From assembly GCA_000320545.1 (NCBI GenBank), contig ADNK01002325.1:70347-134346 (forward strand): a DNA stretch of 64,000 nucleotides. The letters run 5' to 3'. The DNA comes from Bigelowiella natans CCMP2755 (lineage: Eukaryota; Protista; Cercozoa). The position numbers and the translations under genes are program-made. Under the pieces are notes generated by a model. The model was not told the origin of the DNA. It did no database searches and saw only the letters and a program-made list of their open reading frames with translations. Position 1 is the stretch's first letter. Each line of letters starts with the position of its first letter. Shown piece by piece: positions 1,375-58,380 of this stretch.

Positions 1375-2015
1375 ATCTAAGCATGCGAAAACTGCAGCAC
1401 CGAACTTTATTAGGAGTGTCTAGACCATCTAGCCATATTGATGATCAGAAATGCACAGCAGAGCATTTGTACATACATGCATCGGCCCATATCACCACCA
1501 GCCCATCTAGCCATACTAGCATATCTAGATATATCCAAACGTGTGCCCAATCTAGAAATGCGATAAATGCGATGAATGCGAAGAGCTAGCTAGCTAGCTA
1601 GCTTTCTTGAAGCCATCCTAATGTCTAGCTAGCTAGATGTAGAGCTGCTCCACATAATTCTAGAACTAGATAACTGTTTTTCTCTCGTATCGTACACCTT
1701 AGCGCCTGATTGCTAGCATGCTAGCATGTAACCTTACCGGCGCCGACCTTTTACTAGCTATAGCTAGGACCGCCTACCTAGCTACACTACCAAACTAGTA
1801 CATGTACTTCTAACCTTGCTAGCTTGTCTAGCTAGCTAGCTAGTTCTAGAGTTGTACTAGATGTCTGGTGTGTCTGTCTGTGTATGTCTAGATAGCGCGA
1901 TGACATCTAGACATATATGATATTTCTGTGTCTATTATAGACATGCAGAATCTATCTATCCCAAAGTGCCAGCATGCTAGCGCGCGCATGGCTCGTCTGA
2001 ACACATCTAGACATC
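1375..2015. repeat. Palindrome-rich (CTAG/CATG) intergenic zone 1, between convergent genes
   Basis: Dense CTAG, TCTAGA, GCATGC and (GCTA)n runs; CATGCTAGCATG at 1717-1728; CATCTAGACAT at 1904 and 2004. Confidence 0.8.
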
Positions 2016-2517
2016 TTCTGCTATCGATTTGAGGACAGATGGAGCCCAGGTTGATTCATTTATGCAACATGCTGATCGTGCCTTGCTGGCTTGCACGCAG
2101 GGTTCCACGGCAGCACTGGAGCATATCAAAATTTCAACATGCAAGAACTTCGCAATGTTCAGAATTCGAAATAAATAGAAAACAACGACGAGACTTCTAG
2201 ACTTGTTTGTCTGATTATATATGCTGTAAAGAACTATGTGCGTCAAACTCGTTGAGCTAATTGACCCAACACTACAAAAACGAAGGACTGTGGTAAAACA
2301 TAATCTACTACTTGAGTTAGTTTAGTTGAAAGAGCGTGATCGTCGATTTCAAGTAGTAAATCTTAACTTTCTTAAACTGTGTTTTGTATTTTCACCATCG
2401 TCTTTATCATTTTTTAATTGAGGGAATTAAAGACATAGTATCATCATCATATTCGTCGTCCTTGTTATCATCATTCTGATAACACCTTAGCACGTTCTTG
2501 TATCAATAACCCACCCC

Positions 2518-2860
2518 TCATTTATACAACACAGCTACGGTTCTTGACGACGGTTGGGGGGTGCTAAATTCATTCTCAATTCCAAATTTCTTGGACAAAT
2601 TACTACTACTTCTACTATTATTATTACTACTACTACTGGCACAACTTTGGAAATTGCTGCTATTGTTAGTGTTGCTATTACGATTTGCGTTGGCGCTACC
2701 ACCACTACCAGCAGCAGCAGCAGCTGCTGCTGCTTTCTTCTGTTTTTGAGAAATTCTTGCCTGAGCACGTCGCTGAGCTGCTCTAATGTTTTCTGGTAGA
2801 TTATCGTCCATTCCGGCCATCCGACGGAACATCTGAGCAAGTAGTAGTATCAGCAGCAGC

Positions 2861-2891
<31 letters not shown>

Positions 2892-3075
2892 AGAAGAATT
2901 GGTGAGGTGAAAGTGAGAGATATCTCTTGATTATAAGAACAGCGCCATTTATTGTTCTACATTTACTACTTACTGCCGCTGTTGCTTCTGCTGCTGCTGC
3001 TACTCAGTGTATTATGATTATTGTTGTTGTTTTCAAGATGGATTGACGTTACCCTCCTCTTGTTGTTCGTAGCAT

Positions 3076-3111
<36 letters not shown>

Positions 3112-3482
3112 CATTGGATGTTGATGATGGTCAGCAATGTCCACATGCGTGTTTGAAATTACCTTGAAAGGCACACGTTTTTGCCTCCTTTTTCGTGCCG
3201 TCGTTGTTGCCATCATCATTTTCCTAGAAGAAGAAGAAGAAGAAGAAGAAAATGCAGCGGTAGCGGTTTTACCATCTAGCTGCTGCTGCTGCTGCTGATG
3301 ATGATGATGATGAAGATTTGAGGAGACTACTGCTCCCTTGCTGATACTGCTGCAGCTGTTGCTGATCCTTCTACTTCTTTCTCTTCCCACCAGCAGCTTC
3401 AAACGTGGAATCAATGACGGCTTGTGTTTTTTCTTCGTCTTTCTCTTCTGGCTGTTGTTTGATGTGCCTATTGCACTACTAG

Positions 3483-55825: not shown

Positions 55826-55857
<32 letters not shown>

Positions 55858-56890
55858 GTAGTAGTAGTAAATTCGGCAGTTTGTTCCTCTATGGCGTTAT
55901 TATTGCTTTCACAAGATTATGATGATGATGATGATAATCCATGAAATCGGTGACGCTGCTAATTCCGCCGCAACGATGACCACGGTCATATACAACAAAG
56001 GTACAGTAGGCTCGTTGTCAAGATGAAGGGTAGTAGCGGAGGAGGAGAAAGCAGCCTTGTGTTCCGAAGCCAGGCCACTTCAATAACTCAAAAAGCGAGC
56101 GACTGTATCACCTCCCTCATAGCGAATAAAAGACAGCAGCCGCCGAATTATGGTAATGATAATAATAACTGTTTCGAGGGTGGCGTTGAAGAAAGACAGA
56201 TGGAGGAGGAGGAGGAGGAGGAGGAGGAGAAGGAGGAGGAGGAGGGGAGATCTCATCGTCAACGACTACAACAAAGGCAAGAGAGGTGGGGCAGCAAGAT
56301 CACTACTAGAAGCAGCAAGGGGAAGGATAACGACGCAGCAAACCATCATCATCACCACCTAAAACGATGGCGACCTGGATTTATCGAAACTCTTGCCCTC
56401 GTAATGGCCGTAGAAGTTCCTCAATTCTTCATCGGAATTATCATCGCTCTCCTTCACTCACAGGTTGCGCATATAATAGCTGCTAGCTAGTCTTCTGGTT
56501 GTTTGGAAAACGAAATCAGTTGCATAAATATAGAATCTTACTTACCACTTGCTACTACTATTACTACTTGTGATTGTTGGCTGCGTGTTCTTTAGGTCTA
56601 TCTCATGACTTCATCATTTCAACTATGTGCAAGGCTCCCAAAAGCCCTCTTTGGTCCCATCCTCAGCGTCTGGACGATGATACAGCTTGCGCATTTTCGA
56701 ATCGTACAGTGGATTCCCACTATAGCCTCAACCTCCGCCTTCACCACAAATGTGAGTATGAGGGGGGGTACAGCAGCTACAACAACTAGACCCTCCTCTT
56801 CGGCAAGATCGATGACGATAAAGAAGGATAAATCCTTCATCACAGAAGCTAGCAGCCTTCGCGTCGGCCTAAGTAGAAGAAGCTACAGCA

Positions 56891-56923
<33 letters not shown>

Positions 56924-57455
56924 CGATGATGATGCGTAATGATGGCAAGGTGTCAGCAGATGCAAGCAGTCCAACAGCTACTACTTCGACAACATCGCTG
57001 CTATCAGCAGATGCACATTTAAGGCTCCAGATGATGGAACTAGCTACCATAGCTTCAGGTAGTAGGAGGAGCAGCAGGAAAAGGAAGAAGAGGATATTTT
57101 CTTCGCTTAATTTGGTGTTTGATCTAAATCTCTAATTCGTATTTATTTCACAGCACTTGGGATCGTATTACTGGTTGGATTTGACTGCATGGTCATGCGC
57201 AATGCACAAGAGCATCAGGAGGAGCAGGGAGGGAGGGAGAGGAATCTGGATACTCTTCCATTCACGCAGGTTCTCGTGAGCATCTCACAAGCAAGCATAA
57301 CAGCCACGTGCATCACGATAGTGGTGGCCTTTTGGCTCTGTACTTTAGCGTTGTTCCCTACAGCGAGTGAAGATGAAGTGAGGGAGGAGGAAGAGGGAAA
57401 AGAGGACGGAGATAATAAACAAATGAAGCTCCAGCAAGAAGAGAAAAAGAAATGA
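50690..57455 (+). CDS. Large multidomain protein: beta-trefoil-like region, DUF3395-like segment, disordered linker, PH and GRAM-like domains, C-terminal TM segments; 5' end unresolved
   Basis: ORFs 50969, 52041, 53285 (823 aa), 56023, 56605 and 57189 are linked by introns. YFYIQNCASNQFLTV; IDVTKDLQQFIVDGVLRI; PH-like ..RYAIILPSEDLCKIWGLQLSLAI; hydrophobic helices near the C-terminus. Domain calls are by eye. Confidence 0.55.
52849..52906. repeat. 28-bp tandem duplication (CAACACTCTCGCATTCGTATAAACATAA x2) in a probable intron
   Basis: Seen directly. Confidence 0.85.
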
Positions 57456-57809
57456 GAAATAGAGGCCGCAACGACAGAGTAATTCAGAAAATCCCGCACT
57501 CATATTTTGTGACGTTCCTAAAAAGTTATTAATGTGAAAAAATCAAAATTTTAACAGTGAAAATTTGCAAAAAGTAGCTGGCATAACCATAGACAGAAAC
57601 AGGGAAATCCTGAGTTAATGATCAATACATAGCTACGGAAGAGGAGCTTCTTTGCTGCAGTAACATTTGCGTACATGCATGTCTGCAAGACCACCACATA
57701 TGATCGCAGAGTACCGAATCTAGAAATGAGCACATACTGAACTGTTTAAAAACAAGTCTATATAAGTATCACAACAAAATATGGGGGAAAACCATGTTCG
57801 CATTCTCCA

Positions 57810-58380
57810 TCATGAGTCTAGCTAACATGCTAGCGCATGCGTGGTCATCACGTACTAGCGTAGTTATCTAGTTATGAAGTCGCAGCAGCCAAACTCATAT
57901 GTTAACTGTTGGTAGCTACAGCGCGACCTGTCTGCACAATGGTGTGCAAAGCGCGATGGGTTTGTGCAGCATTACTTTGTACAGTGTGCACAACATTCTA
58001 GCATGCATGACTGCACGCATGGCATGCATGGAGATCTCTAGATGTAGCAGTTCTAGAGCCAGCTAGGCCATGTAGCACATCGCAGCTAGCATGGAAAGAT
58101 GAAGCACAAAGACAGACGCACTGTGCACATTCTGCATGTCGAGACTATCGTGCAATTCGAGTACAACACAAAGCCACAAAGCAATGAACAAATCTGATGA
58201 TTGGACAATGCTACAAATGGGAACTTCTCAAAGTTTTGATCGACATGACTCCACAATGATGGTAAAGAACTACCCAGAGAATAATTCGAAATCCACATCA
58301 CCGCAACAGCAGTGGCAGCATCATCACCATGTGTCTCTATGCGTGCAATTACGCATGCATTGAGGTTAAACACGCAACAT
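57810..58380. repeat. Palindrome-rich intergenic zone 7, between convergent genes
   Basis: CATGCTAGCGCATGC at 57826-57840; many CTAG, TCTAGA, GCATGC and TGCA words. Confidence 0.8.

Follow-up and report, generated by a model that had tools for sequence, protein, structure and literature searches.

X-CTAG-X scars in untranscribed spacers past gene ends of Bigelowiella natans, and their possible origin as excision footprints

The footprints of Tc1 have the form TA-CATG-TA and those of Sleeping Beauty the form TA-CWG-TA; the ciliate PiggyMac acts on a tetranucleotide centred on TA, and at trapped topoisomerase II (Top2) duplications of 2-4 bp arise when ends are filled in and joined. For Mariner and Stowaway elements, PMC4561436 describes an excision which leaves the target duplication plus bases of the element ends. 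A chemistry based on a 4-nt stagger on a tetranucleotide is described for piggyBac in PMC7351741, and integration into safe havens of compact genomes in PMC5391098, for the Dictyostelium TRE elements, found near tRNA genes. In B. natans a TpA-directed hypermutation, of the type A>G/T>C, has been described (10.64898/2026.01.13.699255). The present analysis concerns a 64,000-nucleotide stretch of the Bigelowiella natans CCMP2755 genome (G000:C1412:70347-134346, from an assembly of 91.4 Mb in 3,736 contigs), called the window in the following, where seven intergenic zones carry scars of the form X-CTAG-X, X being a duplicated 4-bp target. Each scar is an 8-bp insertion, composed of a target duplication and a constant palindromic core; the targets show a symmetric preference, and the scars are confined to untranscribed spacers. 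Literature searches found no paper describing them.

Structure, number and nesting of the scars

The window has a G+C content of 44% and its genes are spliced and intron-rich. An initial annotation, made from the sequence alone, had marked seven zones, for a sum of 4,172 bp, as packed with short palindromic words. All seven exist: compared with the remaining window, the density of CTAG is 22.5 against 1.7 per kb (13x), that of CATG 21.1 against 4.2 per kb (5x) and that of TGCA 16.5 against 5.2 per kb (3.2x). GCGC (4.1x), GTAC (3.3x) and AGCT (2.9x) are also enriched, while AATT, GATC, TCGA, TTAA, TATA and ATAT show no zone enrichment over the rest of the window. A blind scan in 250-bp bins recovered six of the seven zones; the remaining one, at 30220-30670, is weak for CTAG, despite a CATG/TGCA-rich composition like that of the others. 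The five positions given by the annotation for the 12-mer CATGCTAGCATG (1717, 36876, 41983, 47834 and 48015) are exact, and the window contains no further site.

Palindromy is not the defining property of the zones, and two mutational layers underlie the pattern. Of the 197 CTAG in the window, 43 are flanked left and right by the same 4-mer, for a chance expectation of about 0.8, and all 43 perfect scars fall inside the zones. Outside them, flank matching is binomial and none of the 101 CTAG is perfect. Inside, the numbers of CTAG with 0, 1, 2, 3 and 4 flank matches are 8, 16, 17, 12 and 43, a distribution which indicates that many of the remaining zone CTAG are decayed scars. Of the core and period combinations tested, only CTAG at period 8 gave a signal not due to microsatellites.

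The same structure is found well beyond the window. A scar-rich sample of 175 kb contains 195 CTAG with 4-bp direct-repeat flanks. The 12-mer CATGCTAGCATG is the X-CTAG-X case in which X is CATG, and CATG-CTAG-CATG occurs genome-wide in 3,828 copies, against 7 for the reversed control. Similarly, ACAT-CTAG-ACAT is found at 1,733 sites (control, 10), while the true palindrome ACAT-CTAG-ATGT is found at 114, so that the direct form exceeds the form with inverted flanks by 15:1. The number of perfect scars in the genome was estimated, by scaling either from the target share of CATG or from the scar density in unseeded DNA, at roughly 30,000-55,000. An empty site was observed in a single case, at locus L031, where one of three paralogous units has exactly 8 bp extra, reading CATG-CTGG-CATG.

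These data bear on the least probable of the explanations considered, namely that the zones were produced by point mutation without any insertion, either by CpG deamination or because CTAG escapes TpA erosion. The zones do have an excess of CA/TG, as such a process would predict; CpG is nevertheless undepleted in them, flanks are identical for 43 of 96 CTAG inside zones against 0 of 101 outside, the paralogous L031 copies differ by an 8-bp indel, and CTAG is not immune to change, since its CTGG/CCAG derivatives amount to 26% of perfect scars. For CTAG, the explanation is thus already contradicted.

The zones are not copies of an interspersed repeat. The initial annotation had described them as not colinear, and all-against-all BLAST of the 175 kb gave no zone-to-zone alignment; a genome search with zone 5 matched zone 5 only, which is therefore single-copy. 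An origin as interspersed repeats or copies of a known transposon was rejected for lack of colinear, multi-copy similarity. DNA contigs from a 2025 culture are identical to the reference over zones 4 and 5, one of them spanning 41064-42449; the scars are therefore not assembly artefacts, and these two zones show no scar turnover between culture and reference.

The zones, and the features related to them, are listed below by window coordinates; strand is given for the transcript, the other features having none.

1368-2215: zone 1, with 16 perfect X-CTAG-X scars, at 1425-2193; flanked by a plus-strand gene ending at ~1340 and a minus-strand NLR-like gene ending at ~2520 (strand calls +/-)
1503-1532: triple overlapping insertion into CCCATATATCC, with targets CCAT, CATA and ATAT
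15293-16168: zone 2, with one scar, at 15672; convergent spacer between an RGS-like plus-strand gene and a REJ/PDZ minus-strand gene, with alternating purines and pyrimidines (RY alternation) and rich in CATG/TGCA
30131-30719: zone 3, with one scar, at 30215; composition as in zone 2, CTAG weak
36172-36920: zone 4, with 4-5 scars, including those at 36587, 36604, 36811 and 36876; tandem gap between the 3' end of an SNF8-like plus-strand gene and the 5' end of the next plus-strand gene
36893-41872, plus strand: spliced transcript, with its 3' end at the left edge of zone 5, scar-free introns and GT..AG joints, supported by contig pieces in runs X15 and X19
41774-42767: zone 5, with 11 scars, at 41901-42460; convergent spacer between a kinase-FAD oxidoreductase plus-strand gene and a DUF707 minus-strand gene
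41897-41916: nested scar CATG-(CTAG)3-CATG, in which a later event hit the CTAG that a previous one had left
47444-48656: zone 6, convergent spacer with 8 scars, two of them CATGCTAGCATG
57651-58464: zone 7, convergent spacer where 2 scars are perfect and 7 other CTAG are present

Target preference was derived from 165 reconstructed unseeded target sites. At position 1, C accounts for 0.47-0.58, A for 0.30-0.38 and G for 0.03, and position 4 is the mirror image, giving a weak, symmetric M-N-N-K preference; no preference was seen at these sites beyond the four target positions. Such symmetry is characteristic of a dimeric enzyme making a 4-bp staggered cut.

CTAG and CATG make up 22% and 11% of the targets, respectively, and, as both words are favoured, scars seed further scars. 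In zone 1, the collapse of nested scars deletes 120 bp over 15 events; at 1503-1532, iterative collapse returns CCCATATATCC after three overlapping events. The form CATG-(CTAG)3-CATG is found at 60 sites genome-wide, where about 1.5 are predicted by extrapolation from the two-unit class, CATG-CTAGCTAG-CATG, which has 76 sites and represents 2%. The prediction by parity of zero (CTAG)2 cores between identical flanks failed on these 76 sites, leaving the (CTAG)3 excess as the sole support for nesting. Slippage of a single unit is an unlikely source of the two-unit cores; as a conjecture, two CTAG overhangs may occasionally be filled in instead of annealed.

Within zones and clusters, the spacing of scars is that of random placement. 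Hotspots at the nucleotide scale were rejected on this spacing, which indicates that targeting acts on the zone as a whole and not on particular positions inside it.

Transcription and base composition of the spacers

The gene map was based on codon-scored open reading frames, Pfam matches and RNA contigs, exons being searched singly, with no joined spliced model. The initial annotation had assigned the zones to six convergent gaps and to the gap following SNF8, with none in divergent gaps; our map, in which an EAP30 (SNF8) exon lies on the plus strand at 33424-33597, led to the same count of six convergent gaps, one tandem gap and no divergent gap with a zone. Over the window and 27 other loci, the flanks of 29 scar clusters are convergent in 10 cases, tandem in 6 and divergent in none, the rest being ambiguous; flanking strand calls are noisy where exons are short.

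RNA and DNA coverage was evaluated in four runs over 36450-42449. RNA contigs from two studies define a spliced plus-strand gene from 36893, and end at 41843 and 41872, where zone 5 starts; raw RNA read depth falls at about 41850 from 7.6 to 0.4, and in the zones of this interval is close to zero. At zone 4, the SNF8 transcript ends within 36450-36649, where RNA depth is high, no RNA is found at 36650-36849, and the next plus-strand transcript begins by 36893. The zones are thus untranscribed spacers, starting where the transcripts of the flanking genes end. Nine RNA-supported introns contain no scars.

The coverage of one of the runs, X21 (raw RNA of 2026), is nearly confined to the final ~200 bp of each transcript (36450-36649 and 41650-41849). 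It resembles a 3'-end tag library and could be used to map poly(A) sites genome-wide. At another locus, L014:1-1090, a scar zone adjoins tandem coding repeats of ~126 bp, made up of WD40-like 'VRIWN' units with 92% mutual identity.

Base composition was compared, after removal of the scars, between the zones and other non-coding DNA (divergent gaps, tandem gaps and introns). All seven zones, including the two which contain a single scar, are distinct from the latter. CATG remains at about 20 per kb in zones against 4-8, TGCA at about 17 against 3-8; CA+TG is 207 against 145 per kb, the GC step 84 against 41, TA outside CTAG 48 against 65, and RY alternation 0.60-0.66 against 0.45-0.54. CpG is at 40 per kb in zones and 36 elsewhere, with no depletion, and the CpG-deamination reading proposed in the annotation therefore fails; what survives of that proposal is a mutational origin, TpA being low and CA/TG and GC high.

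This background fits an erosion, by TpA>TpG/CpA changes, of alternating DNA rich in (TA), which may have been its cause, judging from composition. By such transitions, TATA would be converted to TGCA, CATG, CACA or TGTG. According to PMC12730881, (AT)n repeats are common in Amorphochlora, a sister species, and largely absent from B. natans. The scars decay along the same route: CATG-CTGG-CATG and its complement are found at 1,013 sites genome-wide (control, 4), and among the one-base variants in the sample CTGG (19) and CCAG (14) exceed the expectation of ~4 each, the others being near background. The excess implies that the rate of change at the central TpA of the scar is several times that of the duplicated bases. 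Erosion in the spacers is partial, not near-complete as in viral regions.

The position of the zones recalls another interpretation of the annotation, a termination, insulator or boundary element, according to which the palindromic words would be selected as signals at gene 3' ends. The strict association with 3' ends, the start of zones at transcript ends, and the RY-alternating composition common to all seven zones, single-scar ones included, are in its favour. The number of scars per zone varies from 1 to 16 with random spacing, so that neither number nor position appears constrained; the zones are unalignable and share no conserved motif, the scars freely decay by point mutation, and direct repeats outnumber palindromes. 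A functional element of this kind is accordingly regarded as improbable, and this part of the annotation is not upheld.

Possible origin of the scars

Three features expected of a footprint are found in the scars: a flanking duplication of fixed length, a short constant palindromic core and, in a single case, an empty site in a related copy. We favour, at slightly better than even chances, their origin by excision of a cut-and-paste element whose ends are 5'-CT...AG-3', the footprints surviving only past gene ends. In the proposed mechanism, an enzyme would cut the target with a 4-bp stagger, the duplication would be filled in, and the constant CTAG would be left between the copies. The enzyme may be a transposase belonging to a low-copy element whose ends read 5'-CT...AG-3' or 5'-CTAG...CTAG-3', in which case the footprint would correspond to the two terminal bases of each inverted end, or to re-annealed CTAG overhangs.

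Selection on the 8-bp scar itself cannot explain the restriction to spacers, because introns, which in B. natans total 31.3 Mb (PMC12730881), would tolerate it. The restriction therefore points either to targeted integration or to selection against the full-length element elsewhere: integration would be steered to untranscribed chromatin, or the element would be harmless only there until excised. With about one third of the genome in exons and one third in short introns, the spacers past gene ends would be the sole safe haven. In this respect the annotation, which had also suggested that a DNA-binding or modification system acts on the zones, was right in spirit: an enzyme which cuts with a 4-bp stagger and leaves CTAG may be aimed at the zones, or its insertions may be tolerated only there. 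Taken as a whole, the interpretation given by the annotation is supported in part.

More tentatively, and with the chances rather against it, the scars may be the product of a new cut-and-paste system, either a transposon lineage or a domesticated enzyme, which would integrate with a 4-bp stagger specifically into untranscribed chromatin beyond poly(A) sites and exit precisely through cohesive ends always resealing as X-CTAG-X; its ~30,000-55,000 marks, each of them a fresh preferred target, would sustain a self-reinforcing growth of the spacers.

Several results weigh against excision footprints. A search for the source element, as a 4-bp target site duplication and CT...AG ends with terminal inverted repeats, gave only chance matches in the window and the 175 kb, and no longer X-CT..AG-X core, of 5-30 bp, is recurrent. 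Pfam searches of the genome, for which the families tried were DDE_3, piggyBac, MULE and DDE_1, found no DDE_3 or MULE domain; for piggyBac (DDE_Tnp_1_7) there was no genome match, the control search being likewise matchless. The sole intact transposase found is a pogo-like DDE_1, whose left boundary starts with CGTAGG, not CT; PMC12730881 gives the number of DDE transposase genes in the species as eight. In addition, the scar varies much less than is usual for footprints of end joining, core variants of the types X-3nt-X, X-5nt-X or 6-base not being seen, and the two-unit core is impossible from any canonical series of 8-bp events. Lastly, none of the 21 published de novo indels of mutation-accumulation lines is a CTAG scar. 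A steady-state model, with the published 3.46e-10 per site per generation and ~35,000 perfect scars, implies a rate of ~1.5-3e-4 scar events per genome per generation, or 0.4-0.8 events expected in the mutation-accumulation experiment, so that this last result is weak evidence.

The pogo-like DDE_1 gene, an intact frame of 594 aa, is located at L036:1096-2880, on the minus strand, and at L037 (G000:C2661 and C2845). The two copies are 99.4% identical over more than 3.1 kb, and three other contigs carry partial copies. At L036:3200-3258 there is a perfect palindrome of 59 bp.

Two other repeated sequences, which occur in or near scar-rich DNA, were considered as scar source and set aside, as they do not have CT/AG ends. 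The first is a conserved motif of ~75 bp, with the core ...GCTACATTAGGATGACCATTGAAAG..., which recurs in scar-rich spacers of other contigs and is absent from the window; the second is a small TA-rich, hairpin-like element with inverted ends TATAGACATGTAATA ... TATTACTGTGTCTATTATA, whose partial copy in zone 1 adjoins an ACAT-CTAG-ACAT scar.

L017:1679-1823, L032:2030-2174 (inverted), L016:780-855, L003:178-233 and L002:6310-6363: ~75-bp motif
Window 1915-1950, L027:1040-1120, L015:720-803 and L008:1441-1466: TA-rich element

Since neither element nor enzyme was found, and the scar is unusually uniform, a one-step micro-insertion by a host enzyme was kept as the main rival, although we consider it unlikely. 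Here a host or domesticated nuclease or integrase would make 4-nt staggered breaks, which would be filled in and sealed with a constant CTAG; a topoisomerase-II-like enzyme, active where convergent transcription piles up supercoils, is a possible candidate. Besides the extreme uniformity, the weak symmetric target preference with its 4-bp stagger and the location of scars in convergent spacers are compatible with such an event, as is a ~2x enrichment, in zones, of 4-bp tandem duplications without CTAG; trapped Top2 is in fact a source of 2-4-bp duplications through fill-in and end joining. Addition of a fixed tetranucleotide is, on the other hand, not known for any break-repair route, and a constant palindromic core would be expected of inverted element ends.

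The precision of the scars is also reminiscent of programmed DNA elimination, in which tens of thousands of germline-limited elements would have been precisely excised from the sequenced nuclei, as in ciliates, each leaving X-CTAG-X. In their number, ~3-5x10^4, and their precision the scars are similar to the excision junctions of ciliates, elements are absent from the assembly, and the cuts of PiggyMac likewise have TA at the centre of a tetranucleotide. Chlorarachniophytes are not known to have dimorphic nuclei; moreover, the scars are nested, overlapping and inherited in mutated form, the piggyBac domain was not found (the control search also being matchless), and the 2025-culture contigs match the reference exactly over two zones. 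For these reasons elimination is considered very improbable.

The mutation-accumulation data contain what looks like a second stereotyped insertion signature, as 7 of the 13 de novo insertions end in ACA (10.64898/2026.01.13.699255 supplement). Among the 21 indels, these insertions are GACA, CAACA, ACA, ...TAACA, ACACA, ...CAACA and ...TTACA, and a multinucleotide change, TGGC>AACA, accompanies them.

Comparison with known systems

As a rule, the footprints left by transposons are few, irregular and dispersed, whereas in B. natans one exact 8-bp scar is present in tens of thousands of copies, only past gene ends. The scars map, over the whole genome, the places in which an integration enzyme can act or is tolerated; should their source be identified, a new type of element could be defined, or a new target rule which reads untranscribed or termination-zone chromatin. 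They also offer a dated neutral substrate for measuring TpA-directed mutation, and may explain the growth of intergenic DNA in a compact algal genome. In genome annotation, the zones can serve as an inexpensive marker, based on sequence only, of gene 3' ends and convergent gene pairs in B. natans.

As in the footprints of Tc1/mariner and Stowaway, both duplications are retained, with few bases of the inverted ends between them, and the core is short, constant and palindromic. The duplication is instead a variable 4-bp M-N-N-K sequence, not TA, and no DDE_3 was found; the scars are, in addition, near-invariant, present in tens of thousands and found only past gene ends, with no element detected. 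Membership in Tc1/mariner, defined by a TA target duplication, was rejected on the 4-bp M-N-N-K targets.

With piggyBac and PiggyMac the scars share the 4-bp stagger, a joint formed by a palindromic tetranucleotide with TA at its centre, and a joining which looks precise and cohesive. Unlike piggyBac, which targets TTAA and is excised seamlessly, they leave 8 bp; varied targets and the 8 bp left behind exclude them from this family. Top2 duplications of 2-4 bp are similar in that 4-bp duplications would result from filled 4-nt 5' overhangs and a link with transcription stress would be expected. Nothing is inserted in them, whereas in the scars a constant CTAG always lies between the copies, and plain 4-bp duplications are enriched only ~2x; an assignment to this class was therefore discarded.

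The TpA hypermutation of B. natans agrees with the decay of the scars, of which TpA>TpG/CpA is the main route, and with the zone background: TpA is lost, CA/TG is gained and TpA transitions dominate the decay. In the preprint (10.64898/2026.01.13.699255) it is reported from integrated viral DNA that is silent, where its rates are very high, while in the spacers the erosion is partial; neither CTAG nor the 4-bp duplications can be produced by this mutation. As for the Dictyostelium TRE elements, traces of mobile elements would be restricted to harmless places in a gene-dense genome; in B. natans the haven would be the spacers past gene 3' ends, and what accumulates there would be footprints, not elements.

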